Below are positions 7,401 to 64,000 of a stretch of 64,000 nt of DNA, piece after piece (the stretch's first letter is position 1; the number at the start of each line of letters is the position of its first letter). The stretch comes from Haliotis rubra. Taxonomy: Eukaryota. The position numbers were made by a program, and so were the translations under genes. A model generated the notes under the pieces. The model saw nothing but the letters and a program-made list of their open reading frames with translations. It was not told the DNA's origin and did no database searches. The stretch lies in contig NW_025767021.1 in NCBI RefSeq assembly GCF_003918875.1, positions 124,001 to 188,000 of the forward strand, in the 5' to 3' direction.

Positions 7401-10046
7401 GCAATAGACTATCGCTATTGCAGTATTATGTTGCAATAGACTATCGCTATTGCAGTATTATGTTGCAATAGACTATCGCTATTGCAGTATTATGTTGCAA
7501 TAGACTATCGCTATTGCAGTATTATGTTGCAATAGACTATCGCTATTGCAGTATTATGTTGCAATAAACTATCGCTATTGCAGTATTATGTTGCAATAGA
7601 CTATCGCTATTGCAGTATTATGTTAATAGACTATCGCTATTGCAGTATTATGTTGCAATAGACTATCGCTATTGCAGTATTATGTTGCAATAGACTATCG
7701 CTATTGCAGTATTATGTTGCAATAGACTATCGCTATTGCAGTATTATGTTGCAATAGACTATCGCTATTGCAGTATTATGTTGCAATAAACTATCGGTAT
7801 TGTATTATGTTGCAATAGACTATCGCTATTGCAGTATTATGTTGCAATAGACTATCGCTATTGCAGTATTATGTTGCAATAGACTATCGCTATTGCAGTA
7901 TTATGTTGCAATAGACTATCGCTATTGCAGTATTATGTTGCAATAAACTATAAGCTATTGCAGTATTATGTTGCAATAGACTATCGCTATTGCAGTATTA
8001 TGTTGCAATAGACTATCGCTATTGCAGTATTATGTTGCAATAGACTATCGCTATCACAGTATTATGTTGCAATAGACTATGGCTATCGCAGTATTATGTT
8101 GCAATAGACTATCGCTATTGCAGTATTATGTTGCAATAGACTATCGCTATTGCAGTATTATGTTGCAATAGACTATCGCTATTGCAGTATTATGTTGCAA
8201 TAGACTATAAGCTATTGCAGTATTATGTTGCAATAGACTATCGCTATTGCAGTATATGTTGCAATAGACTATCGCTATTGCAGTATTATGTTGCAATAGA
8301 CTATCGCTATTGCAGTATTATGTTGCAATAGACTATCGCTATTGCAGTATTATGTTGCAATAGACTATCGCTATTGCAGTATTATGTTGCAATAGACTAT
8401 CGCTATTGCAGTATTATGTTGCAATAGACTATCGCTATTGCAGTATTATGTTGCAATAGACTATCGCTATTGCAGTATTATGTTGCAATAGACTATCGCT
8501 ATTGCAGTATTATGTTGCAATAAACTATCGCTATTGCAGTATTATGTCGCAATAGACTATCGCTATTGCAGTATTATGTCGCAATAGACTATCGCTATTG
8601 CAGTATTATGTTGCAATAGACTATCGCTATTGCAGTATTATGTTGCAATAGACTATCGCTATTGCAGTATTATGTTGCAATAGACTATCGCTATTGCAGT
8701 ATTATGTTGCAATAGACTATCGCTATTGCAGTATTATGTTGCAATAGACTATCGCTATTGCAGTATTATGTTGCAATAGACTATCGCTATTGCAGTATTA
8801 TGTTGCAATAGACTATCATATTATTGCAGTATTATATTGCAGTATTATGTTGCAATAGACTATCGCTATTGCAGTATTATGTTGCAATAGACTATCGCTA
8901 TTGCAGATATGTTGCAATAGACTATCGCTATTGCAGTATTATGTTGCAATAGACTATCGCTATTGCAGTATTATGTTGCAATAGACTATCGCTATTGCAG
9001 TATTATGTTGCAATAGACTATCGCTATTGCAGTATTATGTTGCAATAGACTATCGCTATTGCAGTATTATGTCGCAATAGACTATCGCTATTGCAGTATT
9101 ATGTTGCAATAGACTATCGCTATTGCAGTATTATGTTGCAATAGACTATCGCTATTGCAGTATTATGTTGCAAAAAACTATCGATATTGCAGTATTATGT
9201 TACAATAGACTATCGCTATTGCAGTATTATGTTGCAATAGACTATCGCTATTGCAGTATTATGTCGCAATAGACTATTGCTATTGCAGTATTATGTCGCA
9301 ATAGACTATCGCTATTGCAGTATTATGTTGCAATAGACTATCGCTATTGCAGTATTATGTTGCGATAGACTATCACTATTGCAGTATTATGTTGCAATAA
9401 ACTATCGCTATTGCAATAGTTGTTTCCCCTCAGTAGTCACCCCTAATGGCAGTCAATCATAGACTCAGAACTTGTATCAAACTTGATGTGCAAATTTATG
9501 TATCATACATATTAAATCTATATTTATTTATTATAAAATATATCTGACTGTCCGCATGGCAGACTAAGGCTGAATATAAGCCTCAGTGTACCACTGAGAA
9601 TGCCTAGATACATCCCTGACATTGCCCATCACTGCAAGGATATTAACAGTGGGGTCTAAGAATTTATTATTAACCTACTTTCATTTATTTGTTATTATTT
9701 TTCAGTCAATCTTTGGACATATATTTTGAGAATATTTCTATCCCAGGTAATGACCCGACTCCTTGCGTCCACCTCCCCTGTGATCTACTGGTTTGCTGCT
9801 CAGCTCATCACGGACAAGACCTACTATCAGAACTCCTCCAACAAGTACAACATTTTCTCACCACAAAGAGTCCAGCGCATTGAGACGGGGGCCAACCTGC
9901 AGCAGGCCCAGAAGGGGAACCTGCTCATTGACCAGATCTCAGACTTCTGGAAACAGAGCACCAACACCAAACTCGTGCTGGTCTACTTCATGTGTTACTT
10001 TGTAGTAGGGACAGCAGCTTTTGCCAACTTCCTCCCATGGACATAA
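4409..10046 (+). CDS. PIGV: GPI mannosyltransferase 2, 3 exons, ~519 aa
   Basis: Exons 4409-4486, 5225-6406, 9747-10046, all phase-0 GT-AG junctions. Family motifs FNAVIPDH, RWDAVYF, HGYIYE..AFFPLYP, PASIFMTAPYSE, RSNG, YIQKQHWGVGFLQYY, PNFLLA, HIQVMTRLL and C-terminal NFLPWT. Confidence 0.96.
4821..4955. mobile_element. 135-bp foldback MITE in PIGV intron 1
   Basis: ~48-bp perfect TIR cataggcgcccggctctgatatatttataagtatgacc... / ...cagagccgggcgcctatg, with a perfect 8-bp TSD atgtatgt (4813-4820 / 4956-4963). Confidence 0.88.
6912..9445. mobile_element. Probable hAT-type MITE enclosing the 32-bp satellite
   Basis: Termini TAGGG...CCCTA; flanks atagcagc / atggcagt (6/8 match, decayed 8-bp TSD); ctatcgat-type subterminal motifs at 6935-7015. 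Confidence 0.55.
7338..9418. repeat. 32-bp tandem satellite, ~65 copies, in PIGV intron 2
   Basis: Unit gcaatagactatcgctattgcagtattatgtt (period 7401 to 7433); internal palindrome TGCAATAG-N7-CTATTGCA; no unique spacers. Confidence 0.97.
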
Positions 10047-15476: not shown

Positions 15477-23117
<7,641 letters not shown>

Positions 23118-23463
23118 TCTGGACTTAGGGCAACAACCTTTTCGCTCTTCAATTAATTTCTACCTCTCAACAATTCGAAATACTCAATCTATCCCTTGCC
23201 ACTCTCTGGTTGTCGTCATTTCAAATTTGCCTGTTCTCAGTTGTTGTGAGTGCGTCAAAGCTGATTGGTTGATTCTTAAGAAAATGGTTTTGATTGGCTG
23301 TGATACCCGCCATTGGAAAAGACATGAGCATGCATGTATTCAACTTTGACCTCAACTTTGACCTTTGTAATTGTTACACGTGATTTGATTGGACAACAAC
23401 CAAGAAGTACACCAATCCTTTCAATCGTTACTCTGAAGGTACGGAAAACTACTTCCGTTCAAA
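23118..23463. promoter_or_regulatory. Bidirectional PLK1/PINX1 promoter with G2/M-type elements
   Basis: 346 bp separate the two ATGs. CHR-like TTTGAA (minus, 23220-23225); CCAAT boxes (ATTGG at 23264, 23293, 23312, 23388; CCAAT at 23412); ETS ACTTCCG at 23451; YY1-like AAAATGGCG at 23461. Confidence 0.75.
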
Positions 23464-26400
23464 ATGGCGATGTTGGCTGAACCTCGACGTAAACAAAAAA
23501 TATCGATAAATCCTCAAGGGACAAATTGGAGTAATGGTGTGTAATTTTGATCAAATACTCTGTTTGAGGAGTTTTGCTTTTTTCATGAATGATGCGACAA
23601 CCAGTAAACACTGGTCGAGAAAACTACCACAGGCATATGACCACGTGGTCAAACATGGGCAATGGTTTAATATTGCTGAAGGTGGGGGGTCGTTGTCGGC
23701 ACAGGTACTACAGATACGTACCCCAGGTACGTTTCTGTATACAGATATGAACCCTAAACAAAGTCAAAATACAGAAACGTACCCGGTACCCTAAAAGGCG
23801 GACGAGTCCATATTCCGCAATCCAAAACCGACACCGCATGTAGTTGTTCCCGTTCAACTGATTGCGAGTGGTATTCACTATCGCGAAATATCCGTTACTG
23901 TGTATTCTCATTACTTACATAAAGCAATCAAATGTATCTAATACAACAGCATGACAGTTCCGATCAAGAATACGACACAATGGGAATGGAATCGTCCTAG
24001 GTTACGTTTCTGTATTCTCATTATGGCCAGGGTACATATCTGTATATATGCCGACAACGACCCATTCAGCCTTAATGTTAAGCAAAGTACAAAGTGTTTT
24101 TGTTTGTTTATTGATACGTATATAAAAGGCAAGAGTTAGGTTTGCCAGGCTCATCTTACTGTTGCAATCCTTTCAGTAGCTTAGAGCAAGCAAAAATTTC
24201 TAAATATTTTTTTCAATGTATATTGCTTCCCCTGCATATTAATAATGAAAAACCAATGAATTTGTCATTTAATCTCACCTAGGTTTGTTGTAATTAAGAG
24301 ACAAAGTAGTTGATTTTATGTATGCAAATGAGGCCAATTTTCTTATTTCTCAAAAAGTGACCCCAGCTCCTGTAAGGTTACTGTTGAGATTTTCCATCAA
24401 AACCCTTCACCATAAATATGTTCCAAACTTCAGGAACATTAGGGCAAACTATTTGAACGTTGGAAAGCACCTTCTGAATTTATATTTCATACTTTTCTGA
24501 AGAATAATGCAAATAGACGGAACCAGTGAAATGAGGAAAAGAGCTTTACCATTTTTTAAAATTTATAAATCAAGTAACATTACAAACTGGAAACAAACAA
24601 AACACATTAAATATCGAAAACATGATCTATTTAATAGTTTAAATCTAAATTCAGTTTCAGATTAATTTTCCTACACATGTTTGAATAATTTAGTCTGTTC
24701 TTTTTATCCCCCGCAACGCGTTTGACAGAACTCTAAAACCGTTCAATATTTCTTCCCCAAACTTGGCACATACATGGATCTGGTGGTGTACTGGTGCCTT
24801 TTGGTAGTTTTGGAATTCTGAATTAAATATTTTGGCATTTCCATGGCAAAAGGTCGACTTTGACTGAAATTGGTGGTAGTGCTCTTTTCGGAGCAGAACT
24901 CTAAAACCGTTCACTATTTCATCACCAAACTTGGCACATAGATAGATCTGGTGGTGTACTGGTGCCTTTTGGTAGTTTTGGAATTCTGAATAAAATATTT
25001 TTGGCGTTTCCATGGCAACGAGTTCGACTTTGACTGAAATTCTTTCAGGAGAAGAACTCTAAAACCGTTTAATATTTCTTCACCAAACTTGGCACATAGA
25101 TAGATCTGGTGGTGTACTGGTGCCTTTTGGTTGTTTTGGAATTCTGAATAAAATATTTTAGCGTTTCCATGGCAACAAGTTTCACTTAGCCTGAAATTGT
25201 GGTAGTGCTTTGAACTTTCAAAACCTTTCAATACTCTCCTTCCACTTTTCTATATATACACACCTTTCTATATATGTCACCATTTGACATAATCATAACT
25301 CGTGAGACATAATCATGAAGAGTATTTTGCCATTGGGGATAAATTTATCACTTGGATATGGTTTCTCATCTATGGCATGAAAGCATCAAGGGAAAAATAT
25401 TTTAACTTTAAAAATGTTCAGAATTCAATATACATTGTATTAATATACATTGGGTTACCATCAGATATATATCAAGACAATAGTCCCAATGTGGCCATAA
25501 GCATGTCAAACTTGTCCTCTGTAATTACACAGATAATATAAAATAAATTAAAATAAATAGTCCAATAGTTGTTATAAATATTTAAACAGTGTCATCTTGG
25601 ATAGTATCATAAACAAAAGAAATAGTCCGATAACAGTGTCATCTTGAAGAAGTAATAGTTCTAAAGAGTTTAGGCTTAGTGTCAGTTTTCTGTGAGCAGA
25701 TGAAATGTCAATCAAGTTACCTCCCTTTGCTTCTTCTATGCTCCAGTTATTTGTTGCTATTAACTTTATATGTACATCTCAAAACAAAAGATTGTAGCTT
25801 ATATTTTGCTGTTACAACCTAAATATGGTCAAAGAATGATGAAAACAGTGACAAACACTAATTTTGTTTGTTTTCATTTAACCGAAGTTGTGCTCGTAAA
25901 GCTAGGGTGTGAAACTACGAGTACTTCCAGTAAAGAGTTCGGGCGGTGGGGTAGTCTAGTGGTTAAAGCGTTGGCTCGTCACGCCGAAGACCCGGGTTCG
26001 AGTCCCCACATGGGTACAATGAGTGAAGCCCATTTCTGGTGTCCCCCGCCGTGATATTGCTGGAATATTGCTAAAAGCGATGAATAAATCACACAATGTA
26101 TCAGTGAAGAATTGATTTTTAATGTATTCTAGGATCAATAGACTTTCAAAATATCTGAGGGAAACATGTGATCACGGACGTTTAAAGAAAGAAATTCACT
26201 TTCCAGGTTTTAAAATTTCCTAATCAGATAGTGCCTTGCTGTGAAAAAACTGCATCTGTCAGCATCTGTTCAATGTGCAGTTTGTGTGTAACTTATAAAC
26301 AGTAAAATGTCGCCTGCACATGAGAGTGAAATGTAACTAAAGCAATATTACAAACTATTTCCTCTTATCTGAATAAATAGGCTGTTTGGGTCATATTTCG

Positions 26401-26988
26401 ATTTGAGTTGACAGTGTAAAACATAATCTATTGTTCATATTACCTGTACAATACAAGATGAAAACGATAGTTATTTCAAGTTAAAGGGACACTACATAGA
26501 TGGTTCGGTTTGCTTTATATCATTCATGAATTATTTTGGAGTGCGACATCACACTTTCAGTTAATGCCAGATTAAATTCTCCAACTAAATACATGTACAA
26601 CTCTGCAAAATGAAGCCGACACTGCAGAGGCAGAGTGAAGTAAAAACCTATTTCTTGCAGACAAGTTCTAAAATACTTATTGTATGCTTTATTATGTTAG
26701 TGGCAAGTGTTTAGCAAACCCAAGTTTACAATGTAAGTATGCCTTGGTGATATGAAGCCAAAAATCCTGGACAGAGTTTGATATGGCCAGTCTATAATCC
26801 CTGTCACATCGTCACATCTTATGCAGTCCATTCATATGTTTTATATCTACTAGTATTTCATTTCGGACAAGTCCACACATTTAGATTAATTATATGTTGT
26901 GATATGTTTATCTTTCATTGAGAAAATATCCAAAGATATTTTGTTTTGTTTGTGTATTTTCCCTCACATGCAGTCATCAAAGCCCACA

Positions 26989-27040
<52 letters not shown>

Positions 27041-30000
27041 AACTGAAATAATTATGGAGACTTAAAATACCATTCACTTAACGCTTGACCTTACCTTGCC
27101 TAACACAAAGTGTCCTTGTGTCTTCTCTGATGATTCCTCCGGCTGTGTCCATTGACTGGAAGCAGCATGGATCAAAGTTGACAGATTGAAACTTTTCCTA
27201 CCACTGTCCATTACTTTCATGCTTTCTACTGACCATTCAGCTCCAAAAGATAATTTGGTGCTCTTGAATGTTTTGAGTTTCCTTTCAGCATATGGCTGAA
27301 GTTGTATAAAAGGTGTGACAGCTCTTGTTTGCTGTGTTGTTGGGTTTAGCAGCTGTTCAATCCAGGGTGTGAAGGGAACAAGGCCTTCGATAACTTTGAA
27401 AGTGGCTTCATCCAGATGATATAAAGTTTGAGCTTCTAGTATTGCTTGAATGTCAGTCATCAACACACCAGCTTTCTTCTGCAGCAGTTGAGGACATGGC
27501 ATGACTTTTGAATGTTTTGTATGTGAATATTTGATCTGAATACAGTTGGTGAATCTACCCCCAGTAAGTGATAATGAAGTACATGGATCACATATACCAG
27601 GCATTATGGCAGCAAGGGATTGATATGGGTGAGTTGATGGTTGAGTGTATGGAGACGCTGCTCCTGGGGGTGTGAGGACCTGTTGGCCTGGGGCCCAGTT
27701 TGGACAGGGAGGCCCAGCTTTGAGCATGGCCTGTGTGCTGTGGGACAGTTGCATAATGGTAGTCGAGTCTGGTAGGTGTTGAGGCAGAACCAAGACTTTT
27801 CCTTCGTGTTTGGCAATGGTGTGCTGGAAGTGACCATCAAGGCAAACAGTATGCTGGCTTTGCTTGGAACATGCTGTGGAGCAACAACATTTGATCCCAG
27901 TATTACATCTCAGTAGAACCTGTGGACTATTGGTACTTTCTGTTGGAGATGCACTTTGTTGGACCTCGGTTTCGAAGGAGCTTGTAGTTTTGTGAGAGAT
28001 CTGGATGCATGGTCTGGTTTCATTTATTGGTACTATTTGTGGAGCTTGGTCAGTGTTGCTGCTGGTGTATTGCTTGGCCCTACATGGCATTTGAGTGTCA
28101 TCACTAGAACCATTCAAGGTTCCTTGAAAGTGAACATCATCATCCTTAGCCCAGAGGGAATGTGAAGTGGATGTCTGAATCTCAGAACTGGGCAAAGGCT
28201 GAACACAGGTTGTAAAGTGTTCTCCAGTTGACGAGCAGTGTGTATCAACTTCAGGGAGTGGTGAGATGTCAGTGATGTTATTGATGGGATATTCTAGAGG
28301 GTCACTGTAGGTCTCGACAACATCATCAGTAGATGGCCTTGTGTATGATGGAGACTTTCCATGTCTCTCCAGTGGCTGCGTGTATGTCATAACACTCTGA
28401 CATGGTTTTCCCGAGTAGCTGCAAAGAATGTCCTCTGTGATGAGGGTCTGGCTGCAGGCTTGGTCCTCCTTAGACACAGGGAGTGTGAAGGTGATAGGAG
28501 TTTCTTCAGCACTGGCTAAGGGCTGGGAGAAGGTGATGAGGGGTGTGATGGACTGCCACCAGGAGGACACTGCACTGCCCACAGCTTTCATGGACACACT
28601 GCTCAGTGACTGCCATAAGGACCCAACCTGTCAACACAAATAGTACAGTTAGCGTACGTCTGATGTTGAAGAAACCATAGGGTATCTGCTAGATTAATGT
28701 CATACTAGGACAAACATAAAGTATGATCTTTATGCATGAAGCAGCATATTTAATATTTATTTTCTTTTGCAGATGACAGCAAATTTGGCCAGAAAATGTT
28801 GGAGAGAATGGGTTGGTCTAAGGGCAAAGGCCTGGGAGCTAAAGAAAATGGCCAAGTTGAACATGTGAAAATAAGCTTTAAAAATGACCAGAAGGGTATG
28901 TGAAAGTAATGGCGATAAGTGACTGAAAGATATGAGAAAGTAATTATAATCATGAAGAATTGTTTTCATAAAATGGGTGTGAATCCTTTTTTGGTGTTCC
29001 CCATTCCAGTCAACAAGATATGCTGGAACATTTCTGAAAACAGCGTAAAACTGAATGTCGACATTGCATTAGCAGTTATTAGTCAGATTTTTAATTAAAA
29101 TATAGTAGACATTTTTAATACACCTTTGATTCACGCATGTATTTCCGGTGATATAGTCAAAAGCTACCATACATTTGTGTGTACATACCCTGTTTGTTTT
29201 AAATTTCCTGAAACAACATACTCATTATAACTTGTCTGACTTGGTATTGATTCAGTGATTGGTGAATTTCTGCAAATAACTGGACTGCATCTGTCAGGTT
29301 GTCTCTGTGTGCGTGTTGTAGGAGTTGGGGCTAACGTGTTGGAATACATCCTAAAATGTCACAGTGTTTGTGTTGCAGGAGTTGGGTCTAACAAGAACCA
29401 AGCAGACAACTGGATAGCTCACCAGGATGACTTCAACAGCTTGCTAGAGACACTGAATGAGGGTCATGGAGGAGGGGAGGTGGATTCCCCTGTCGCTCAC
29501 CAGGTGGCCAGTCTCGAGAAGAAGTCCCAGTCATCGCGAAGCAGAGTACAGTATGTAATCTGAGTAACTGCGGCAGTCTTCATAGATGTATGTATTCAGG
29601 TGTTTCTTTAGGGGAATACTGAGATGCTGCCTAGCAGTGTTGTACTTCAGACTCACTCCCAACTTATGTGAAGGAATGTCTCATGGATTGAATTAATTTC
29701 ATCAAAGTTCATACAACCATAAAATTCCCAACAACAAAAATGGTGTTTTTCTAAGCTTATTTCTCTCCCTTTTTTTTTCTTGTATGAACATTCCCTCTCT
29801 CCTCCTCTTCCGACCCCTGAAGATCCGGTTTAGAATTGGTCTTCAGCAACCCTTGTCGTAAGAGGCGACTAACGGGGTCGGGTGGTCAGACTCAGACTTG
29901 GTTAACATATGTCATATCCCAATTGTGTAGATTGATACTCATGCTGTTGATCACTGGACTGTCTGGTCCAGATTTGATTATTTACAGACCGCCACCATAT

Positions 30001-32943
30001 AGCTAGAATATTTCTGAGTGTGGCGTTAAACAACAAAGCAACCAACCTTCTCTTCCCTTGAATATTTTCTTTATTTTAAAAGGGTAACAAAGTAAGTGGT
30101 GTTACTCATGATTGTGATGTTAGGTGTGGGGTTGCAGTGGGCTATTCATTTACAAAGGTCATAAATTTACTTTGCAGTTACAGCAAGTTCACGAAGGGCA
30201 AAGATCTGTCATCAAGATCACATGAAGATCTCAAATGTATATTTGGTAAACGTGCAGCCAAACCTACCTCTGGAAAGAACTCTCCAGCACTTGAATCAAG
30301 TGTGAGTTACTACCAGTGAAAGGGACACATTTCACATTTTACATGTAGTATGCAAACACACTCTGTAAGCCATTTTACAGGCTAGTGTTTTGAGTATTAC
30401 TGAAAAATCCAACATTTCCTCTGGAATCTTTGTGAATGTATTAATGTGAAGTGACACCTTTTAGAGCTTGGGATGTTTCACATTTTCATTTACATTATTG
30501 AACTTAGATTTGATAAGATTTACTATATTTCCATAGAAACAAATCAGAAGAAATTGTAAGAGGATAATGTGTAAGATTTTTCTGAAGAATATTTTGTACG
30601 AAGCAGTAATGTCTCATTAACATTGAGATGAATGCATAAAATATTTCATAAAGTCACAAGTTAAGCATGGACTTCTCAGTGACTTTAATTTGTGAAGTCA
30701 TTTACTCTCAGTTTTATTTGGGAATGCATTTATAAATGAACATGACAAAGACTCTTACAGTAAGCGTATATTATTTATTTTTTGTAGGAATCCTCAGGGT
30801 CTGAAGAATCGAAGGCTGACATGTCACATGGGTTCAATACCATAAACAGCACCTCTACAATGCAAGAATATTTTGCCAAAAAGATGGCTGCCATGAAGGG
30901 TCAGACGTCATCACCATCAAGGGAAGATAAATGTGGACTAGAATCAGATACTATAGAACAGCCAGCAGAGTCAGCAGCTGACTCTCACTGTCGGAAGAAA
31001 AATAAGAAGTCCAAACGAAAAACTAAGGACTTAGATATAGAAGAAACTGAGAATAATAATTCAGATATGCATATAGAACATAGTAATTTAGGCAGTTGTG
31101 ATGTTGAGCCTAAGAAAAAGAAAAGCAAAAAGTGTAGAAGGAAGCACTCCGAGACAGCCGACTCACCTGGTGATGTGGATGATGTAGTGGACAAGACAGT
31201 AGGTGAGGAGGAGGAGCAAACGGAGAAGAAGAAGGACAAGAAGAGGAAGAGGGAGGAAAAAGAGACTGAGAAGGAAATACAGGAAAAGGCTACAGAGAAA
31301 ACCAAGAAGAAGAAGAAGAAAAAAAAGAAGTCAGCAGCTAGGCAAGTTGAAGGTGAAATTTGTAACTAGTGGTATTGCATTGGCAACAGTGAATCAAACA
31401 TGTCGCTTGTGTTTAGTCCCCTGCCATCCAGTGTTCAGTGTCCGCCATCTAGTGTTCAGTCCCCCCATCATCTAGTGTTCAGTCCCCCCATCATCTAGTG
31501 TTCAGTCCCCCATCATCTAGTGTTCAGTCCCCCATCATCTAGTGTTCAGTCCCCCATCATCTAGTGTTCAGTCCCCCATCATCTAGTGTTTAGCCCTATC
31601 ATCTAGTGTTCAGTCCCCCCATCATCTAGTGTTCAGTCCCCATCATCTAGTGTTCAGTCCCCCATCATCTAGTGTTCAGTCCCCCATCATCTAGTGTTCA
31701 GTCCCCATCATCTAGTGTTCAGTCCCCCATCATCTAGTGTTTAGTCCCCCATCATCTAGTGTTCAGTCCCCATCTAGTGTTCAGTCCCCAATCATCTAGT
31801 GTTTAGTCCCCCATCATCTAGTGTTCAGTCCCCCATCATCTAGTGTTCAGTCCCCCCATCATCTAGTGTTTAGTCCCCCATCATCTAGTGTTCAGTCCCC
31901 CATCTAGTGTTCAGTCCCCCATCATCTAGTGTTCAGTCCCCCATCATCTAGTGTTCAGTCCCCCATCATCTAGTGTTTAGTCCCCATCATCTAGTGTTCA
32001 GTCCCCATCATCTAGTGTTCAGTCCCCATCATCTAGTGTTCTGTCCCCCATCATCTAGTGTTCAGTCCCCCCATCATCTAGTGTTCAGTCCCCCTCATCT
32101 AGTGTTCAGTCCCCCCCATCATCTAGTGTTCAGTCCCCATCATCTAGTGTTTAGTCCCCCATCATCTAGTGTTCAGTCCCCCATCATCTAGTGTTCAGTC
32201 CCATCCCTCTTTCCCCCCTCTTCTCCTCTTTCTCCCTCCCTCTCTCTCTCTTTCCCCCAAAAAAATCTAGTGTTCAGTACCCCCATCATCTAGGCATCAG
32301 TCAAAGCCCATTCCCCCATTGTTAGTTGCACAAGTGACTTAACAGGTTCAGGTGGTCAAACTGTTGCTTGACAGATTGTGTGACGTAATGTCATGCAGGA
32401 CATTGCTGATTCTTTCAGTGACTGACTTTATCTAGAGGTAATTGTGATATAGCAGAAGTAAAACTGCAGTGTAAAAAAAAAAAGCAAACATCATAAAGAG
32501 CAGGGGAAAATCAGCTTTGTCACATTGAGACTATCACCCTGCAGTCTCTAATTTTAACACACCGACAAGCTTTCATAATGCCTATAATCACATGTTATTT
32601 GGCCAATATTGTTCATTCCAAAATGGAACTGAGTGAAATGTTATTTGTCTGCAGTGTAGAGAGCAGTGAGCTTGGAGAAAACGGGGGGAAGAATGGAAGC
32701 AAGGCATCAAAACCAAGAAGAGCTGGGCTGCGGCCACAGAAGCTTCCTCCCCTCATCCAGAGTACTTGTGACTCCTTCAAAGGTGCCAATGTGGCCTCTA
32801 TTGATGGATATAATAAATCATCACTCCCAGCTTCAGAGTTGATGAAGAGAATTGAAAGTAAACATAACATGGTATTGTGGCAGTTGAAGGCAAAGAAACA
32901 AGATAAACAACTTCGAATGCAGCATGGCCTTGACCAATGTTAG
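23464..32943 (+). CDS. PINX1: PIN2/TERF1-interacting telomerase inhibitor 1 (G-patch protein), 6 exons, ~444 aa
   Basis: Exons 23464-23536, 28773-28895, 29379-29550, 30178-30301, 30788-~31341, ~32655-32943. MAMLAEPRRKQK...WSNDDSKFGQKMLERMGWSKGKGLG (G-patch), DNWIAHQDDFN, RVHYSKFTKGKDLSSRS..DLKCIFGKR and a Lys-rich tail match PINX1. The last junction is uncertain; without splicing the ORF stops at 31369. Confidence 0.92.
24700..25235 (+). mobile_element. Non-autonomous Helentron/HINE-like element with three ~160-170-bp internal tandem units
   Basis: Begins tttttatcccccgc. Units gaactctaaaaccgttc...caccaaacttggcaca...tttccatggcaa at ~24728, ~24896, ~25054. Related single-unit copy at 33926-34190. 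Confidence 0.6.
25941..26080 (+). mobile_element. tRNA-derived SINE family A
   Basis: Pol III A box TAGTCTAGTGG and B box GGTTCGAGTCC in a tRNA-Asp-like head, followed by a non-tRNA body shared with other copies. Confidence 0.88.
26985..27040. repeat. (CA)n microsatellite
   Basis: Roughly 25 CA units. Confidence 0.95.
27095..28627 (-). CDS. Large antisense coding exon nested in PINX1 intron 1; probable alternative 5' coding exon of PLK1
   Basis: 511 open codons lie between acceptor TTGACAG and donor AAG|GTAAGG, phase 0/0. First ATG at 28591. The exon ends HFVLGK, matching the PLK1 exon 1 end RFLGK. Confidence 0.75.
29812..30045 (+). mobile_element. SINE-like repeat family B, full-length copy
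   Basis: Homologous to 944-1134; (caac)n tail; near-perfect TSD cctcctcttcc / ccttctcttcc. Confidence 0.85.
31410..32292. repeat. ~22-bp minisatellite in the last PINX1 intron
   Basis: Unit cccccatcatctagtgttcagt with variable C-run, about 36 copies. Confidence 0.96.
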
Positions 32944-38530: not shown

Positions 38531-41500
38531 CTATCTTCTTATACTATACATGAGTGATCTGTGACTAGCATCTGGCATGCCAAAATCTACTTTAAGTGGG
38601 TCCTTCATGTCCAGTGTGTAGTCTGCTTGTTCACCCACCCAGCTGTCACCTACTGTCTGGGTGGGACTGGGGGTACTGTAGCTGGACGACTGGGTACAGG
38701 GGGAGGACCAGTCATAGGGGTGGGGCAACATCTGGGGGCCAGGGCGGACAGGGATAGGGGGAGGGGGAAGATTGGGTGGAGGTATAGAAGGGGGCATATT
38801 TGAGCTTTCGGACATATCTAAATCCTGGGGGGCAACATCTGGTGGAAATGAATCCAGTCTGGGTGGAGGTGGGGGTGGTTCCATAGGGCAGCTGGGTGGA
38901 GCTGGTGGGGATTCCTGGGGACAGTCTCCCTGGGGTGTTGGGGAGGAGGACTGGAAGGGTTTACTTCTCTCTGGGCCTCCAACAGGGTAAGACGGACATG
39001 TGTCGAGGGCTGGAGGAGTTGGTGGTGGACTGACGTCTGGACACGGAGGATCAGCCGTTGAGGGTCTTGTTGATGCATCTGGAGGTCGGACAGGGATAGG
39101 AGGTGGGTCATGAGTGAGAAACTTGGGTATTGCACTTGTATCAAAGGGGTCAGGCTCACTGCTGGTGTCACCTAACAAAGGAGCATCTAATATGTTATGA
39201 CTTTGCACTGGTGGACCACTGCTATGACTAGATGTTTCTTCTGACTGAGATCCAAATGTTGGTGGTGGACCATTAGGTACAGGAGGCAGTGGCCTCCCTA
39301 CTGCACTCAGTGGTCGCTGCGGTGGTTTCACTATGAAGGGATCATCTGGGTCTGAGGCTGGAGAAATGACGGCACTCTGAACATCTTTTCTGGGAGTTGG
39401 CCTGGGTCGGGCAACAGGGGCTGTAGTGACCTCACCGCCGGATTTGTCCGACAACAAGTTCTCCATACTGCGGAACCTTGGCATTGGCTTGGGAGGTGCC
39501 TGGCTGCTGGAACTACTGGAGGAGGTGTCGGTACCTGCCATGTCCTGGGCAGTCCGACTTCTAGGGATTGGGGTAGGTGCAGCCAAAGCTGAAGCGGAGG
39601 AAGACATGTCTGAAAAAGAACAAAAGTAATAGCAGCTAGAAAACCTGGTGAAACTGTACAATCAGTGTTATTCTATTTCTTGTGGATAAATACTTCCCTC
39701 ACAAATGGCTTCTGTTCTCAGCAAATAATGATTCATTGCTGTTTACTAATAACTAAACGATTTGATGTTGAAAAATGTAATTTTTATGATAAAATTGATA
39801 TTTTATACTTATCCTGACTCATGCTATATGCTTCAGATCATGAGTCAGGATAAGGAAAAATTTAGATTTTGAATAACCTAATCAAGTTGTTTTGAGCCAT
39901 GTACTTGGTGTGACAGAGAAACATTAGTATTATACATACCTCCAACAGGTGCAGGAGTGGTGCTTGGCATCATGGGCGCTGGTAAATTAGCATTCGCGTT
40001 TCCTTGGTTACCTCCCATCAGGTTACTTATCAATTTCTGTGCCTCTTCCATACTGCTGGCATGTGTGTGATGTGTTACGTTGGTGGGAAGACCAATAGAG
40101 GAGATCTACAAAAGGAGGGAGGCCATGCGAGGTTAATAGAACACACACTGGGTTATTGATCAACAGATCAAGATCAGAATTCAAATACTTTATTGCCATG
40201 CCCCAAAGTTGAGTTTCTGAAACTGTAAACACTAGTGGGGGGCTACTAAAGGTAGAAATCACACAGCTGCACTCAGGAACTGTTTTATGGTTTGGTTAAC
40301 GTCAACATCTGACTCTCTCCATGAAACTGTTTGAAATGGTTTGTTAAGATGGTGACAACATGGATGAACAGAAACATAAATCACACAGCATTCTTTGTTT
40401 CTAGCCACACAAATTGAGAAGTGCAATTCAAAATGTAGTCAGATCTAAGAAACAACAGACAGAGAAGACCAGCTTACCGCACGGGGACCTCCCTTCTTGG
40501 CCTTCAGCTTGGCTGAGGGTGGGGGGCGGAGGGGCTGGCGGATCTTGGGGGCCTCTTTCCCCACATGTCTCCCTGGGGAACCTGCCAGGAACAGACATCA
40601 ATACTCCTGTCACACTAGATTTCAAAGTGACTTTAAATAGACGAATGAAGATGCGGTTAGAATTTGTCTTCAGCAACCCATGCTTGTCATCAGAGATGAT
40701 CATACGTGTTGTCAGTGGTGACTAACAGGATGAGATGGTAAGACTCGCTGACTTGGTGGATGTATGTCATTGTATTGAAGTTTACATGCCACTTAAAATA
40801 TTTTTAAAAAAAGATTCCAGCATGCTTTCATTCATTACAACTATGTCAACACCTAGTGGAGAGCCATGTGCATGACTCGACAGCTGAAGTGTATAACTAA
40901 AGGTGAAGGAACTAAAGGTATTTCAGAAAGCATATGTCATCGAAGGTTTAAGGTCACACTGGACCAATAATCTTGTCATGTTACAAACAACATAAATAAG
41001 AAAAACTGTATTAGTAATTTTCAAGTTCAAGTGAGTTACCAAAAACTGTATGACAGCCATCCAAAGGAGGATGTGTCACAGATGTCTGATGACACTAGAC
41101 TAGAGTTTTCACATTGTGTCATCTCACCTGGAGGTGCTTGATTAGCAGGTGCCCCTTTAGGTGGCCCTCCAAGGGGGCGCTGTGGAGGTGGAGGCTTCGC
41201 AGGTGGGGCTCCGGGCCTCTGTGGAGGCTGTTTGCGAGGCATCTGTAACCAATACAAAACACATACTGAGTAAAGCATGTGTACAACAGTGGAGAAACAT
41301 CAAATCAAGTGGGCCCCAGTATAACAGTCATCATCATCATGGTTTGCATGTGCATCAGTTTGTATGCAGTTAATTCTGCAAAAGTCTCTAAGTAAACTTG
41401 TAAATTTCAAATGATATGAATGAAATAGGGTCTTTACAGCTTACCATTATAGAAATCATCAACATCATCAACAAAAACAAACTGTAAATTTGAATCCCAA

Positions 41501-44500
41501 CAACTCAAGAATAAACCAATGTTTTAAGTGAAGGACAGAACATGCCTCCATGGGCTTGGTTTTGTAAGTAAAGGGTTAAGTGAGGTTCTACAGAACAGCA
41601 CTGAAAGCTCCTTTGAAAATGACTTGGCATATCAAAAGCAGAGTTGTTACTGGTCCATCCTCAGTTATAGAAAATATAGACACATAGTAAGATGACAACC
41701 TGGAAGTTGACAATCATATGTCCATTTGAACCCAATAATTTGCTTACAAGCAGATGAAGACACTTTAGAAGGTGAACATTTGAAACATGTTCACAGTTAA
41801 ACTACCTCTGGCGATGGTGAACTCCGAAGTCTTGCCCCAGGCTCTGGAACAATGAGAGCTTCTGCCCCACCTGGCGCCGCCCCACCTGGAGCTGCCCCAC
41901 CAGCACCGGGACCAGCTGCGGGGCGGGGTGGGGGCTTGTCAGGGCGAGAGGGAGCTGTTGGGGGTCGACTCGGCGGACCTGCAGGAGGTCCACTAGGGGG
42001 TCCTCCAGGGATGTCAGTTGGTATTTCCTCCTGTACAGCGGGGCTGTTGCGGCCTGTGACAAACAATGGATGTCTGAGTGGGTGGATATTTCAGTGAGTG
42101 GCTGGGTGGGTGGATATTTCAGTGAGTGGTTTGAGTGAGTGGCTGGGTGGGTGGATATTTCAGTGAGTGGCTGGGTGGGTGGATATTTCGGTGAGTGGCT
42201 GGGTGGGTGAATATTTCAGTGAGTGGTTTGAGTGGCTGGGTGGGTGGATATTTCAGTAAGTGGCTGGGTGGGTGGATATTTCAGTGAGTGGTTTGAGTGA
42301 GTGGCTGGGTGGGTGGATATTTCAGTGAGTGGTTTAAGTGAGTGATGTTTGAATCGCTGTCAATTCGTAACCAATACAGTTCACTGACTGCAATACATGC
42401 AAGACACAATGACAGAAGTTATGATTATCAATAGCAATGGGGACATGACAACACCATGTGATAATTTTGTACAAAACAAGTGATGGAGGAAGTCAATGTA
42501 TTCAGAATGTAGAAAGCTGACGATGTAAGTACAGTGAAATCAGTAAGTTTCCCAGCATTACATAATTATGGGAGAAGGACTGGTCCCAGGGTCCATGAGA
42601 AATTATCTTGCCTCACACATAATGCAATTTTTGGATTAAAATTGATATTTTATACTTATCCTGACTCATGCTTAATTGCTTGTCTTCTTTTTCTTGCAAA
42701 TGATAGTGGAACACTTGAATCCCCTTTTGAAGCTCCCTTCAAAAAATCGGACATAAAATCACTCACCCAGTGTTACCTCCCTTAGGTATTTTGGCGGCAA
42801 AATCTGTCACATGACCAAACACACTCTTCACTCTCTCCAAATATGAGCCCGACACCCGGATTACAGGGAATCCAGAATGCCATGAGGGGAGGTTGGGAGG
42901 TCTGACCTCATGAGTCAGGATAAGTATAAAATATCAATTTCAATAAAAAAAAGTACATTTTATGCAACTCCATGTCTTGATGCTCGCATCAAGTGGAGAA
43001 GCGACCCTTCTTCATGTACGAGTAAGTCCTTTACAAGTACAGGGTCCGTCACTCATGCTGGCCTGTCCTAGACGGGCGCATGGACTCTAAAGCTCTAGCT
43101 CTTCAGAGCGTTGGCTTTTACAAGTCACGTGATAAAAGGGTGATATTCATCTCAGCGCCTTTGAGGAACCGTCAATTGTTGTGCTACAACAAGAGGCCCA
43201 AACTGGTGAATGCCGGAGACGTCCTCGGTAGCAATGTCTCTGAGGTAGTGGTTGGCAAACACCGTCTCCGACTTCCAAAAGCAGCCCTCCATTATTGTCG
43301 AGATGGAGCAGTTTCCAAACAGAGCGAGTGTCAATGCCAGCGCTCTGACTGCATGAGGGTTGGAGGCTCGTTGAGGCTCAAGTCCTGCTGCTTTGTAGGC
43401 TCTTAGGATGACAGCTCTCATCCATATCGATATTGTCGTACGTGAGACCTCTGTAGCTGTCTCCGTTGATAGAGGGATGAAAAGGCGCTTGAATTTTCGT
43501 CTCCTCGTCTTAGACCTTTTGTAGGTAGACTTTCAATGCTCTGACTGGGCATAAGGATAGGTCCAGAGTATCCTGTGGCCCAAAGACTGTCGAGAGTGCT
43601 GGGATGTGGAACTGTCTGTCTGGTTGACCGGCCAGTTGTTCTTTGCTATGAAGTCCCATCTCAATCCCAGATGTACGATGTTACGATGTGCATCAAATCG
43701 TATTCGTTCAAAGTCCAGAGCATGTATTTCCGACATCCGAGTTGCTGTTGCCAAGGCGATCAAGAACAGAGTTTTGTGTGTTGAAAAGTCATAGGATGTC
43801 CTTTCTAGTGGTTCGTAAGTGTCACTGGTGAGATGCTGCAAGACTACGTTGAGATCCCAAGCAGGCGCTTTAAATTTCTTTTGTTGGTCTTCCAACTTAA
43901 AGGAGCGTAGTAGAGCCAGTATCTCTGGTACTTTGGTCAGCTTAACACCCGTCTTCATGGTGATAACCGCGCTGAGGGCCGCTAGGTATGTAGAGAAATT
44001 TTAACCTTTTAACCGCCTCGTTTGTCTTAGATGACAAAGGTATTCCGCCACTTGAGGATGTGTTGCTCTTCATCGCCATGAAGCCCTTCTTCAATGCATA
44101 TTTCTCAAAACTCTGCCACTTGTCATCGTACAAGTTGCGGGTTGATCTACATAGAGCTAGTGTGACTGCTTTCGCTGCTCTGGCGGAATATCCTCTTTTC
44201 TTCAAGCAAGTCTTGATACGCTCCATGCGTGTAGCTGGAATACTGTTGGATTTCCGTGTACTTGCTTGGTGTGCGGATGAATTAGTAGGTTCGGCCACTC
44301 TGGGAGTTGCAGGGTTGGACTTCCGAGTTCTTGTATGAGGATGGGAAACCACACCCTCGCTGGCCAGTAGGGCACAACCAAAATCAGTTGCAGCTTCTTC
44401 GTCTTCTTGATTTTCTGCAACACCTGCGGTATTAGAGCTGGAGATGCAAACGCGTAAGCGTTCAGTCCTTCCCAGGAGATGCTTAGAGCATCTGTTGTCC

Positions 44501-47500
44501 ATGCTTGTGGATCCGTGACCAGAGAGACGAATGTTGGTAGTTGTTTGTTGAACTTTGTAGCAAACAGGTCTATCAGCGGAGATCCTATCCTCTGTATCAT
44601 GCATCTGAAGGCTTCTGGATGTAACATCGGTTCCGTCAGGGATGGTTGTGTTGGAAGAGATAGGGCGTCTGCTATCACATTCTTGGCTCCGGGAATGTGG
44701 CATGCTTTAATGTTGATGTTCAGGTTGTCTATTATGCTGAACAGATGAAAGCTGAGGTCTAGAAGATTCCTTGACCTTGTTGATCCTTGTTTGTTGATGT
44801 AGAACGCCACTGTGGAGTTGTCCATATGGATCATCAGTTGTGCGTTCCTTAGTATGCTGGACCAGTGTAATAAGGCGTTTATTACTGCTTTCATCTCGAG
44901 CATGTTGATGTGCAGACTCTGCTCCTGACTCGACCATTTCCCTGCTGCCACTTCGTTGTCGAGGTGGACTCCCCATCCTTGAAGTGATGCATCTACGTAG
45001 AGGTGAGTGTTGCACTCCGGCTCTGATAAGTAGGTTCCTCCGCAAACATTCGACTTCCGAGTCCACCATAGAAGATATGGTTTCAGTGTCTAGATGAGCG
45101 TTCACAAACACTTGTAGTGGGTGCAGTTGTACTCTTCCTCTGCGTGTCATGTCTTGTGCTGATGTGAGAAGACCAAGTAGGCTCTGGCCAACTTCATAGT
45201 GGTAACGGAGAGAGTAGTGCTTGAGATATCATGTGTTGTATCTTGACCCAACGCTCCTCTGGGACGACTATGCGATTCGCCGATGTGATGAGCCGTATTC
45301 CTAGGAATTGAAGATCCTGTGTGGGTTCTAGTTCCGACTTAAGGAGAGTTACTAGCCATCCTAGTTGAGTGAGCAGCCTGATGGGGAAGTCTAATTGCAG
45401 TCTGAGTTGACTGGGATCTTTATGAGCTTGAATCCCGTCGTCCAGGTAAACGCACTGCGTAGACCTTGATGATGTAGATATGTGATGATGGGCTTTGTCA
45501 CTCGAGTTAACAAACAGGGGGCCGATGATATTCCAAATGGTAGCACCTTCAATTGGAAATGACGTCCGTTGAAGAGGAATCGTAGGTATCTCCTAGAGTC
45601 CTGTAGATCTATGCTGGCGAGGTAGTCTAACGGACAAACGAGTTGTCGCAATTGAGGAAGGTGTATCATCCTGAATTTTGTGGGTCTGCCTAGATAATCT
45701 TGGTTGAATTTCCTCATGTTGTAGATGAGTCGGAACTTTTCCCTGGAATTTTTCTTTGGTACCAGGAAGATTGGGGAGTAAAAACCGGGCGTGACGAGCT
45801 CCTGTTTTATCTCTTCGACTGCCTCCTTCTCGAGTAGAGTTGTGATGGCATCAAGTAGGTTCTCCCTCTGGTCGGCAGCATAGTTGTGGGCCAGAGAGTT
45901 GCTTGTCAACAGTGGTACTGCTTGTAGTTGTATCTTGTATCCTCTGCATAGGATCTGGGATACGTCAGTCGTCCTGAAGAATTCCCCAATTCATCCCAGT
46001 AGTGTTGCAGACGTCCACCCACTTTTGATGAAGTTTGTATGGGAACGGCTGGAGGTGGAAGACTCCAGTCGTTCCAAACCCATCCTTCAGCGTCTAAAGT
46101 TCCTGGCACCTCTGGGTGCTCTCCTCTGGAGTTGCCGTATTTCTTTTCCCTGGCTCTCTGTATCCCCGTAAACTTCGACTTACCGGAGTAGCGTTGCCAT
46201 GTCTGACGGATAACACTGGCCAGTGTATCGATGGACTTGATCATCATTACCTCCCTTGACTCTTTCGTAACTTCTTTGGCCATGTCCTCAATTTCCCCTG
46301 CGAAGATAGATGATGCTGACCACGGAGCTCTGTACAGTGTCTTGGTGAAGCGCTCACTCCAACTGCAGGAAGACAGCAATCAGGCCCACTGATGTGGATG
46401 ACAGATGTTTGGACATAAACTGATGATCTTTCTTTGGGACAGCAATGCAGAGTAAATCATTCTATCTTCTTCAGAGGTCGAGTTCCTGAACTTCGTGATG
46501 AGGGTTTCATTGATGGCTCTTGACCTGGCTAGACCAAAGAAGGTAGGTCTGGTAGTTTTGTCTAGTTGTGCCAGCTTCTTATCCTCTATTTTATAAGTCC
46601 TTGGTCGGGAGTCGTTGATGATTTTGTAGTTCTCATCTATCTCTGGGGCCTTCATGATATGGTTCCATGTGGTGAAGTGAGGCGCTGAATGGCGGGAAGC
46701 TTTGGCTCTGGAACTTTGTTGCCTTCCTGAAGGCTGTGCTGAGGTTCTCCGGTACATCCGAGACAGGATCGATGGGTGGAAGGGTAAGTGTTTCAAAGTC
46801 GTCGTTCGACATCATATATGTGAATGCTTCATTATCCTCTTTAGAAGGTGATGCAAGTTCCAATCCATTAGCCATCCAAGATTTGATCGCTGTATCGGAG
46901 AATATGATTCCGTCATCATCTTCAGATCTAGAGGCCTCTGTTTCTGAAGATCGTCGCCGTTGTGCCTCCTTCCTGCGTGGAGATCTGCATGGAGACCTGC
47001 GTGGAAACCTGTGTGGAGACCTGGGTGAAGATGTGCCTGAAGACCTTCCTGAAGACCTTCTTGAAGACCTGCGTGCAGGTGACCGGTTCAGATAAGGATC
47101 CTCCCTGGAGTCTTATCTCTGTGCCTTCGTGAAGGTGTAGATTCTCTTCTACGGGATGCGGGGTACATGCATGCAGGCTCCTGATGGCTGTCCGTATCTG
47201 AGGTCGAGGATGATCTGCTTCTGCGATGCTCCGGTGAACATCTGGTTCTGCTCCTGCCCGAAGGCTCCTCTGGAACATCTACTGCAGATTCATCGTTGTC
47301 AGGGCTGGCAGGTTCTCGGGAAGTTGCCGTGGACAATCGTCGAGTGCATGACCCTTCACATAGGTTCCCTCCTTCACACAGGCTACCATCTTCAACAGGA
47401 TGCGATCTGCAGGCTGCTTGTCCTTCGTGCAGGCTCGACGTAGATAGGGCCTTCGCCGCAGCCTTCTCCTGCGCGAACCTCCGTTCCATCAGGTCCAACA

Positions 47501-50500
47501 TCTGCTGAGTAAGCTGCTGCATGAAGATACCCGGGTTGAAATTCTGCGACGACAGCTGCTGCTGCTGCAAAGATGACGACGCATCTGAAAGTGCTGAGGC
47601 TTCTTCCAAGGAACGCTGTGCTTGTGAAGAACTGCCGCCTCTGGTATCTGATGTCTGCGTTGATAGAACGTCTGACTGCATTGAGATGACTGCTGACGTC
47701 ACTGTAGAAGAAGATCTCGTCTTTTTCTTAACTGCTACGTCAGGAATGAGGATGGTTGGCTCGTCATATACGTCTACTTCGTCTGAAGGGATGATCTCTG
47801 CAGCGAAGGACCTCGTCTTCTGCGCTGCCCCATGGGAAGACTTCGCCGAAGTCTTATCTGCAGACAACTTCTTTTTCTGAGAAGACGATGCCCTGGTCTT
47901 CTTAGACTGCGATGAGGCTACTACTGACATTGATGACCTCTTCCTGGAGCCGGAGCTTCCATCTGCCACAGCAACATGCTCCGTAGGACAGCAATAAACG
48001 GTTATCAGCGCAATCACTCGATTTAGACATGACTTGTAAAAGCCGTCTAGACCTGTCCTTGGCACATCTAAGAATGGAATATAAATAATTATTAAATTCA
48101 ATTTCAGATAAATGCTGACAAAGTTGACAGCGTAAGCTGGAAGAACATGTAGAAGTACAATTAGGACATAATAAATGCGGATCAGCAACCGACAACCGGT
48201 ATCTGCAATGACTGCAAGTTTTCATCAAATGTAAACAAGATGAAATATCATGTCAACAACGTGGATAAACAGATAATTTAGACAAATATTTCAAACCATA
48301 TCGCTGGTATATCTTCTTAAATGCTGTATACAGCTAATTTAGTGGTAAAGGCCTAAAAATAAAAGGATATAGTGCCGTATAGGGGACCGAGGCGCTCTCA
48401 CAACCGTCCTCTAGGGCGAAGAAGGAGAGAGTGAAGAGCGTGTTTGGTCATGTGACAGATTTTGCCAACAAAATACCTAAGGGAGGTAACACTGGGTGAG
48501 TGATTTTACGTCCGCTTTTTTTAAGGGAGCTTCAAAAGGGGATTCAAGTGTTTCTCTATCATTCGCAAGAAGAAGGAGACAAGCAATTAAGTATGAGTAC
48601 GGATAAGGAAATATTATGTCGTTTTCTGATTGGCTGAGCGTTCTTCTATTATTTTCAATGTACCCTGCGTACAAGCGAGTAACATTTTCTATGTACCCCG
48701 CTGGGAATGCTGAACTCATTAGGTACTTCGTAGTAGTAAGTCTTTATCTCGAATAACATTGAATCACGTATGATGTACCTAAATTACCGATGTTTTGCAA
48801 ATGCAAATTGATGGAAGGGAGATAACTCTAAATTTGTATTTCTTGTCATCTTGTTGTCTGGTACTCAATACTATGATCCAATACCCGTGCTTCAAACAGT
48901 TCAAAATTATCATTGAGATGTTCGGTAAGATGAATATGTTGTTCACTGGTCCCTCGGGGCCCATGTGTTGATCTACCCTCAATGTTTCTCAGGGAACATA
49001 AACAAACATCAAGGGTACATCAGCCCATGTCCCCCTCAAGACCAGTGAACGCAAAATTGTCCTATGATACACGAAACTTGGCAAACCCTACAGCCTTAAC
49101 CGTTAACATATCAAATGGGTCAAATCAGCACCCAACATACAAAGTGCATAACACTGTCTGTGAGTTCTTAAATTATCTCGCTGTTGGGGGTAGAGGATGT
49201 AAAAGTTTCAACTCAGTCCAGTGATTTCAAAATGTCCTTTAATCTCAAGTTCCGAGCTTTCTTACTACACTTCTTCACAATCCAATCCACACAATGACAG
49301 AATAACAGTACCTAAACGTTAATTTAACAGTGACTAGACAATGTCTAGGCAATTAATGCACAGTGGCTGGACAGGTTGAAAAACCGTATGTCCTCTAAGC
49401 CCACAACACACAATTCTATAACACTCTCTTAGAAACTTAAAAACATGTCTTACTGCTTCAGTATCTTAAAGCTCTCTGTCCCTTTCTCACACTCTTTCAT
49501 TCCACATGTGTCGCTTAAATTCTTGGTCGGCCACTTATCGTGGTTGATCAGGTCAGAACCCATAGGACCCCAAGAAGACAATTAGTCTATAAGTCTTAGT
49601 TGCAGTGGTAAATCACAGCTGCCACCAGTCCTGTGAATGTAGCCTCGGGACATTTGCTGGCAGCAGGGGCTGGCAGATTCTTATGTCTCGACTAATATCT
49701 ATATACTAAGCACATGCAGCCTCTCACACACAAACCCTAACAAAGTTACAAATATAATATTTTGCATGTACAGCAAATGCCTAAAATTCGGCTCTAACAT
49801 TCCAGCCCCTAATTGTTACTTATATCTGAATGTAACAATTACCATGAAATTATATAGAGCGAATTTTTTACTTTAAACAATGTCATCCTAAGCTACATTA
49901 GTTGACTTAACAACTAGACGTTATAACAGTGGACATTCTCTCTGAGTTATAATCTTAGTATATTACAGTATGCAAGAACTAATCGAACATATTAGTCGAT
50001 GCTCTTCGTCTTAACTTCAGATTCGTTACAAGTTACAGTCTCAAAACACAGTTTAAGTGTCACTCTCAAGAAGCAAGCACAGCTTGCTGATTGGTCTGTC
50101 CAAAACCTTTGTCTGGGTTTTCACTTCGACACGTCTAACAACACCCTTTCTATCTGGCATAAGCTTCACAACTTTGCCCATTGCCCAGGAATTTCTAGGT
50201 GCTGTATTGTCCACTATGAGCACGATGTCACCAATCTTCAAATTTCTTCTTATCTTCACCCACTTCTGTCGTTCTTGTAGTAATGGCAGATACTCTCTTA
50301 ACCATCTCTTCCAGAACAAATCCGCCATATACTGCACTTGGCCACCGACGCCTTGGATATGAACCACCCAAGTCAGACATACCCGGCGGCAAATTCGGTT
50401 TTCTCTTCATGAGCAGCAAGTGATTTGGAGTGAGTGCTTCCAAATCATTTGGGTCACTTGATGCTTTGGATATAGGTCTATTGTTAACAATAGCCTCTAT

Positions 50501-63646: not shown

Positions 63647-64000
63647 GCCTGTCATGTAACCGTGATGTCTGTCTGTCGTGTAACCATACTGCCTGTCACG
63701 TAACCATGATGCCTGTCATGTAACCATGATGCCTGTCGTGTAACCATGATGTTTGTCTGTCGTGTAACCATACTGCCTGTCATGTATCTGTGATGCCTGT
63801 CATGTAACCATGATGCCTGTCGTGTAACCATGATGTCTGTCTGTCGTGTAACCATACTGCCTGTCATGTATCTGTGATGCCTGTCATGTAACCATGATGC
63901 CTGTCGTGGAACGATGATGCCTGTCGTGTAACCATGATGGCTGTCATGTAACCATATTACCTGTCATGTAACCATGCTGCCTGTCATGTAACCATGATGG
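63647..64000. repeat. ~20/24-bp minisatellite, runs off the window
   Basis: Unit ccatgatgcctgtcatgtaa with variants. Confidence 0.93.

Follow-up and report, generated by a model that had tools for sequence, protein, structure and literature searches.

Does a long open reading frame (ORF) that lies antisense inside an intron of PINX1 encode part of the neighbouring kinase, PLK1? We addressed this question in a 64,000-nt stretch of DNA from the blacklip abalone Haliotis rubra (QXJH01000347.1:124001-188000), here called the window, to which all positions refer and in which the gene order is PIGV (+), PLK1 (−), PINX1 (+) and synaptojanin (SYNJ, −). All of the ORF falls inside PINX1 intron 1, on the PLK1 strand and 4 kb upstream of that gene, and a first-pass annotation had proposed it as a hidden alternative N-terminal exon of PLK1. 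Judged from the DNA, it is probably a genuine coding exon that serves PLK1 either as a bridge or as an alternative 5′ exon. The explanation that we tentatively favour is that it is a coding exon that joins PLK1 exon 2 and is entered from an upstream synaptojanin exon (exon C) in a conjoined SYNJ–PLK1 transcript.

Boundaries and coding character of the open frame

The stop-free frame (hereafter the ORF exon), its splice sites and the PINX1 exons on either side are located as follows; a slash within a sequence marks the splice junction here and throughout.

27095-28627, minus strand: stop-free, exon-like frame of 1533 nt and 511 codons, phase 0/0, with the C-terminal end GHFVLGK
28628-28652, minus strand: acceptor region with a ctaac branch-point-like motif (25 nt upstream), a T-rich tract and cag/G
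27086-27094, minus strand: intron side of the donor, AAG/GTAAGGTCA, with an in-frame stop at 27074-27076, six codons past the donor
28522, minus strand: first exon base of an alternative in-frame acceptor (score 5.0), giving a 1428-nt, 476-codon version
23464-23536, plus strand: PINX1 exon 1 (coding part), head-to-head with PLK1
28773-28895, plus strand: PINX1 exon 2 (G-patch), 145 nt from the ORF acceptor

The listed ORF (27074-28597, minus strand) comprises 507 aa counted from its first start codon, and the frame is open already from 28627. Two codons upstream of the acceptor, which reads ...ttgtgttgacag/GTT at 28628/28627, stands an in-frame TGA. The coordinates and phases given in the first-pass annotation all hold, namely those of the ORF, the 1533-nt 0/0 exon, the acceptor with its TGA, the donor with its stop, and the ends of PLK1 exons 1 and 2; antisense nesting in PINX1 intron 1 holds as well, as PINX1 exons 1 and 2 bracket the ORF. 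We scored splice sites with position weight matrices (PWMs) composed from general knowledge. The acceptor scored 4.14, close to the synaptojanin exons A–C described below (3.7-4.8), and the donor AAG/GTAAGG after 27095 scored 7.26, compared with 3.87 for the PLK1 exon 1 donor. Ranked against the minus strand at 21.9-42 kb, the donor is among the best 0.2% of 1141 GT sites and the acceptor among the best 2.7% of 1127 AG sites.

The ORF is far beyond chance expectation. It keeps 511 codons open in a window whose overall G+C is 41%, G+C rises to 0.42-0.52 precisely across its span compared with 0.32-0.36 in the flanks, and the codon log-likelihood is highest in the ORF frame (0.205 versus −0.04 and −0.17); for these reasons we do not regard it as a chance ORF. 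It is the sole minus-strand ORF of more than 110 aa within 23-38 kb and the only large minus-strand candidate exon with good sites between synaptojanin exon D (see below) and the PLK1 promoter. The encoded sequence is rich in Ser, Thr, Gln, Pro and Leu and contains 18 Cys. An aromatic/Cys-[STVI]-Q-P motif occurs five times, compared with 0.1 in shuffled sequences, for a pattern picked after inspection of the sequence. Single-sequence AlphaFold2 prediction gave a mean pLDDT of 34.5, with a mostly disordered chain and low-confidence helices at residues 378-490, and was unusable for a fold search.

The absence of a recognizable transposable-element motif, noted in the first-pass annotation, was borne out by Pfam, repeat and window-copy tests. 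Pfam returned no domain in the ORF at E≤1, no flanking inverted or direct repeats were found around it, and no second copy was found in the 64-kb window. A transposable-element ORF found no support in these tests: there was no transposase, reverse transcriptase (RT), integrase or gag-type domain, no similarity to element proteins in the two protein collections searched, no terminal repeats and a window copy number of 1. ESM Atlas features were blank for the ORF, its language-model recognition score was low, and a scan of JGI metagenomes yielded no ORF homologue. Elsewhere in PINX1 intron 1, at 24727-25202, a unit of ~158-168 nt occurs three times in tandem (85-92% identical) and is the source of spurious minus-strand ORFs of 105 aa.

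Fit of the open frame to PLK1

The features that bear on a join between the ORF exon and PLK1 are these.

23010-23117, minus strand: PLK1 exon 1, 36 codons, ending GRFLGK/gtatga, phase 0
21815-21922, minus strand: PLK1 exon 2, starting GGFAKCYE, phase 0; the proposed splice target
27092-27102, minus strand: 11-mer TAGGCAAGGTA spanning the ORF donor, with an identical copy across the PLK1 exon 1 donor at 23007-23017

Both donors, that of the ORF (after 27095) and that of PLK1 exon 1 (after 23010), are in phase 0 on the same strand. The last codons of the ORF are GGA CAC TTT GTG TTA GGC AAG/GTA, compared with GGA AGG TTT CTA GGC AAG/GTA in PLK1 exon 1, and the 11-mer TAGGCAAGGTA has two matches in the 64-kb window, both at these donors, where 0.01 would be expected. 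The L-G-K-G-G-F-A sequence of the kinase comprises the Gly-rich loop plus the end of strand β1, so that any exon replacing PLK1 exon 1 needs an LGK-type ending. The predicted join would keep L-G-K before G-G-F-A-K-C and so preserve the kinase N-lobe, and we regard the GHFVLGK end as the strongest intrinsic evidence for an intended join to PLK1 exon 2. Judged by alignment, the two ends resemble each other either because a very short piece was copied or because of convergence on the need of the kinase. We rejected a larger duplication of PLK1 exon 1, as global and local DNA and protein alignments were blank beyond the last eight codons. The frame upstream of the PLK1 exon 1 ATG is open for just 14 codons. 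The PLK1 and PINX1 start codons lie ~350 nt apart (23117-23464) in the head-to-head arrangement, and two CCAAT boxes and one TTTGAA (CHR-like) element stand upstream of PLK1 on its strand.

How would such an exon be entered at its 5′ end? The first-pass annotation had proposed a PLK1 isoform of ~1046 aa whose coding sequence begins here, at ATG 28591, under a second promoter located within or beyond PINX1; such an isoform would not depend on SYNJ. The length is correctly calculated (499 aa from ATG 28591 plus 547 aa, that is, 583 minus 36), the donor, phase and LGK evidence is the same for this isoform, and the long NCBI gene models described below could merge a SYNJ transcript ending in the ORF exon with a PLK1 transcript starting there. 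However, an acceptor at the opening of the exon requires one or more exons upstream of it, ATG 28591 has T at −3 and is preceded in the same exon by an out-of-frame ATG at 28616, and no protein of ~1046 aa with such an N terminus was found in an exhaustive search of protein representatives (see below). The ORF exon reads as internal because of its acceptor, the upstream out-of-frame ATG and the weak context of ATG 28591, and SYNJ exon C offers an in-frame feeder. We therefore found the second promoter with a start at ATG 28591 unsupported, and consider an isoform of this kind improbable. What survives of the proposed alternative PLK1 N-terminal exon is the exon-like unit, the phase fit, the Gly-rich loop rebuilt by sequence and, indirectly, product lengths in sister species; a start codon of its own is unsupported.

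Proposed entry from synaptojanin and gene models of other abalones

Synaptojanin lies upstream on the same strand as the ORF exon and PLK1, and had been missed in the first-pass annotation. Its 5-phosphatase exons at 62.9 and 62.2 kb were confirmed against PDB 7A17, and the following exons were located downstream of them.

59055-59133, minus strand: SYNJ exon
58343-58546, minus strand: SYNJ exon
57793-58043, minus strand: SYNJ RRM exon
41806-42053, minus strand: SYNJ proline-rich exon A, phase 1 in and phase 0 out
41128-41242, minus strand: SYNJ proline-rich exon B, phase 0 in and phase 1 out, in frame with D if C is skipped
40478-40581, minus strand: SYNJ exon C, 104 nt, phase 1 in and 0 out, donor GCG/GTAAGC; candidate feeder of the ORF exon
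38531-39609, minus strand: SYNJ exon D, terminal and proline-rich, with an acceptor in phase 1, DPF and PxxP motifs, a stop at 38531-38533 and ATTAAA at 38417

Exon C is rich in Pro and Lys and resembles a cassette that is sensible only with a different downstream exon. Joining C to D would frameshift D into a stop, and B to D is the normal in-frame path. Exon C suits a phase-0 acceptor such as that of the ORF exon because it converts phase 1 to phase 0 and B already reads in frame into D. The path B–C–ORF exon–PLK1 exon 2 is open throughout and avoids the stop of D (C out 0, ORF exon 0/0, exon 2 0). The phases at all three junctions can be read directly in the window, as can the ORF, the quality of its splice sites and its mimicry of the end of PLK1 exon 1. 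In the mechanism that we propose, entry would most likely be in frame from SYNJ exon C (40478), with the stop-bearing exon D skipped. The ORF donor at 27095/27094 would splice to the PLK1 exon 2 acceptor at 21922, the 36 aa of PLK1 exon 1 would be replaced, and GHFVLGK would provide the β1 strand and the first residues of the Gly-loop. The conjoined SYNJ–PLK1 transcript would run antisense across PINX1 and over the PLK1/PINX1 promoter.

The in-frame junction with exon C would also serve a reading in which the ORF is coding but unjoined to PLK1, either as an alternative terminal exon of SYNJ (donor unused, product ending GKVRSSVK, AATAAA at 26693) or as an orphan gene nested antisense in the PINX1 intron. 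The stop six codons beyond the donor, followed by the poly(A) signal ~380 nt downstream, would suit a terminal exon, and a long isoform of vertebrate SYNJ1 arises by alternative splicing at the 3′ end. Under this reading, however, the G-x-F-x-L-G-K/GTA end and a donor in the top 0.2% become coincidences, the NPF, DP[FW], FxDxF and WxxF motifs of the vertebrate 170-kDa tail have a count of zero in the ORF, and the sister-species gene models extend to PLK1 domains. We think it doubtful that the ORF is coding and stops short of PLK1.

The gene models of four abalone species, and the product lengths predicted for three splice paths, bear on the conjoined SYNJ–PLK1 transcript.

H. rubra annotation, gene downstream of PIGV: longest product 583 aa, with Pkinase and POLO_box
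H. cracherodii (GCA_022045235.1, JAJLRC010000019.1), PLK1 gene next to PIGV: longest product 2239 aa, with Syja_N, 5-phosphatase (Exo_endo_phos), DUF1866, Pkinase and POLO_box
H. asinina (GCA_037392515.2, CM074539.1), PLK1 gene next to PIGV: longest product 2242 aa, with Syja_N, 5-phosphatase (Exo_endo_phos), DUF1866, Pkinase and POLO_box
H. rufescens (GCA_023055435.1, JALGQA010000006.1), PLK1 gene next to PIGV: longest product 2251 aa, with no Pfam matches on record
Path from C through the ORF exon to PLK1 exon 2: 2211 aa predicted
Path from C directly to PLK1 exon 2: 1700 aa predicted
Path from a phase-0 donor near the end of D to PLK1 exon 2: 1989 aa predicted

We anchored these predictions on human SYNJ1. 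The 7A17 chain corresponds to human SYNJ1 residues 528-873 (PMC7781601). In the alignment, F of the abalone GFAGFSEGK corresponds to residue 770 of human SYNJ1, so that exon C would finish around residue 1153. Among the three tested paths, only the one containing the ORF exon comes within a plausible N-terminal difference (28-40 aa) of the 2239-2251 aa products. These lengths suggest that the long models in the three species include an orthologue of the ORF exon, and we infer that the junctions may be used and a protein produced.

Several points weigh against entry of the exon from SYNJ and its join to PLK1. SYNJ exon C was itself predicted from sequence alone, and the N-terminal length of abalone synaptojanin in the above arithmetic was taken from human. 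The annotation of H. rubra has PLK1 at 583 aa only, lacks the ORF exon and contains no chimera. Annotation pipelines draw on proteins of related species, so that the three long models may share a source, and the codon score of the ORF is not above that of transposon ORFs in the same window. Moreover, if the long models carry the ORF exon, an exhaustive protein search should match them, and no ORF-like protein was found among 1.84 billion protein cluster representatives in a collection that includes annotated proteins of four Haliotis species and is clustered at 50% identity. A word-indexed search of proteins of 281-894 aa likewise gave no match to the ORF. Clustering at 50% identity may file chimeras under a non-chimeric representative and so hide a match; alternatively, the extra ~540 aa of the long models may derive from something else. 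As part of the SYNJ-fed explanation as a whole, which we hold with reserve, the exon would be restricted to a lineage.

A further reading is that the ORF is non-functional, being either a pseudo-exon that has died or a young frame, still intact, left by an unclassified repeat, with its resemblance to PLK1 exon 1 due to chance. The lack of a homologue or Pfam domain and the low recognition score fit this view, as do the predicted disorder, a codon score equal to that of transposon ORFs and the lack of annotation in H. rubra. Against it, the ORF is single-copy in the window and lacks terminal inverted or direct repeats, its splice sites fall exactly at its ends, and the shared 11-mer has an expectation of 0.01. 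In addition, 511 codons cannot long remain open without selection, and the sister-species product lengths are consistent with inclusion of the exon. We consider a non-functional ORF unlikely.

A second H. rubra haplotig, QXJH01000082.1, in which PINX1 intron 1 is placed at about 1.002-1.004 Mb, is 98-99% identical to the window region, and the two copies (QXJH01000082.1 and QXJH01000347.1) are probably uncollapsed haplotigs; the pair would permit an allelic test of constraint on the ORF. Introns of related abalone species are barely alignable with one another.

The SYNJ introns hold several repetitive elements. A BEL/Pao retrotransposon (49453-56685, minus strand) carries Peptidase_A17, RT and DUF1759 gag-like ORFs, including one of 896 aa that had no record in an exact look-up, and identical open segments of 43 codons at 49453-49581 and 56557-56685 are probably its long terminal repeats. 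In the same intron, 43150-48200 (minus strand) contains RT/RNase H ORFs, a tyrosine-recombinase-like ORF (43.1-44.0 kb) and a Ser-rich ORF of 366 aa and looks DIRS/Ngaro-like; Pfam returned only a weak RT_RNaseH match on this element. Coding-looking minisatellites at 59300-60700 and 63650-64000 yield His/Thr/Pro-rich repeat ORFs on both strands.

The last exon of PINX1 encodes 193 aa, and a protein search with it matched nothing within a 1.75-fold length limit, which the full protein, ~357 aa by exon count, exceeds. Just 3′ of PINX1, an ATG-initiated ORF of 121 aa (32578-32943, plus strand) has a modest coding score of 0.15 and may be an exon of a further gene. At the other end of the window lie an exon and an intronic array of PIGV.

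5219-6409, plus strand: PIGV exon, 100% identity to the H. rubra protein and 90-94% identity to proteins of three other abalones
7334-9424, in a PIGV intron: long tandem array, 95% self-identity at a 64-nt offset, yielding repeated QYYVAIDYRYCSI-type ORFs

Significance and comparison with known systems

PLK1 is a mitotic kinase under tight cell-cycle regulation. If the join is real, a new 500-aa N terminus would put its activity under different transcriptional control and targeting, and attachment to a phosphoinositide phosphatase would change both even more. A further step, which we think rather unlikely, is that abalones conserve a natural fusion of ~2240 aa. In it, the SYNJ Sac1 and 5-phosphatase domains would be joined to the PLK1 kinase and polo-box through a dedicated, disordered exon of 511 aa that acquired the exon 1 ending by evolving or by copying it, in a transcript running antisense through PINX1 and bypassing the PLK1 cell-cycle promoter. 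To our knowledge, no PLK1 isoform with an exchanged N terminus has been described, nor is any swapping of this short segment known, and a literature search combining synaptojanin, PLK1 and read-through found nothing. For H. rubra, the ORF points to something that its annotation has probably missed, and for the three sister species one must ask whether the long models are genuine or whether an artefact has passed from one annotation to the next.

Four known systems invite comparison. Like genes nested antisense in introns, the ORF lies wholly in PINX1 intron 1 on the opposite strand, but it resembles an internal exon (acceptor and donor, phase 0/0) and not a self-contained gene. Alternative 5′ coding exons of kinases share with it a donor phase equal to that of exon 1, a common exon 2 and an unchanged catalytic core, whereas the ORF exon opens at an acceptor and lacks a convincing ATG. 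In vertebrates, the 170-kDa isoform of SYNJ1 is a C-terminal extension produced by alternative splicing past the 145-kDa stop, and its tail carries endocytic adaptor motifs. The proposed abalone path similarly runs around the stop of the proline-rich last exon and would lengthen the protein by several hundred residues predicted to be disordered, but the ORF is without endocytic motifs, shows no sequence similarity to that tail, has a strong donor and continues toward a kinase.

Conjoined, or read-through, genes have same-strand neighbours, skip the terminal exon of the upstream gene (here D) and use exon 2 of the downstream gene as acceptor, bypassing its exon 1 and ATG; the proposed transcript would do likewise, and chimeric models are present in the annotations of three sister species. 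It would differ from such genes in crossing a third gene, PINX1, in antisense together with a bidirectional promoter of the CCAAT/CHR type. It would differ also in having a dedicated 1.5-kb bridging exon that lies between the genes, maintains the reading frame and restores the residues at the end of the skipped exon 1, and would show how a bridging exon can turn neighbour read-through into a coding fusion.

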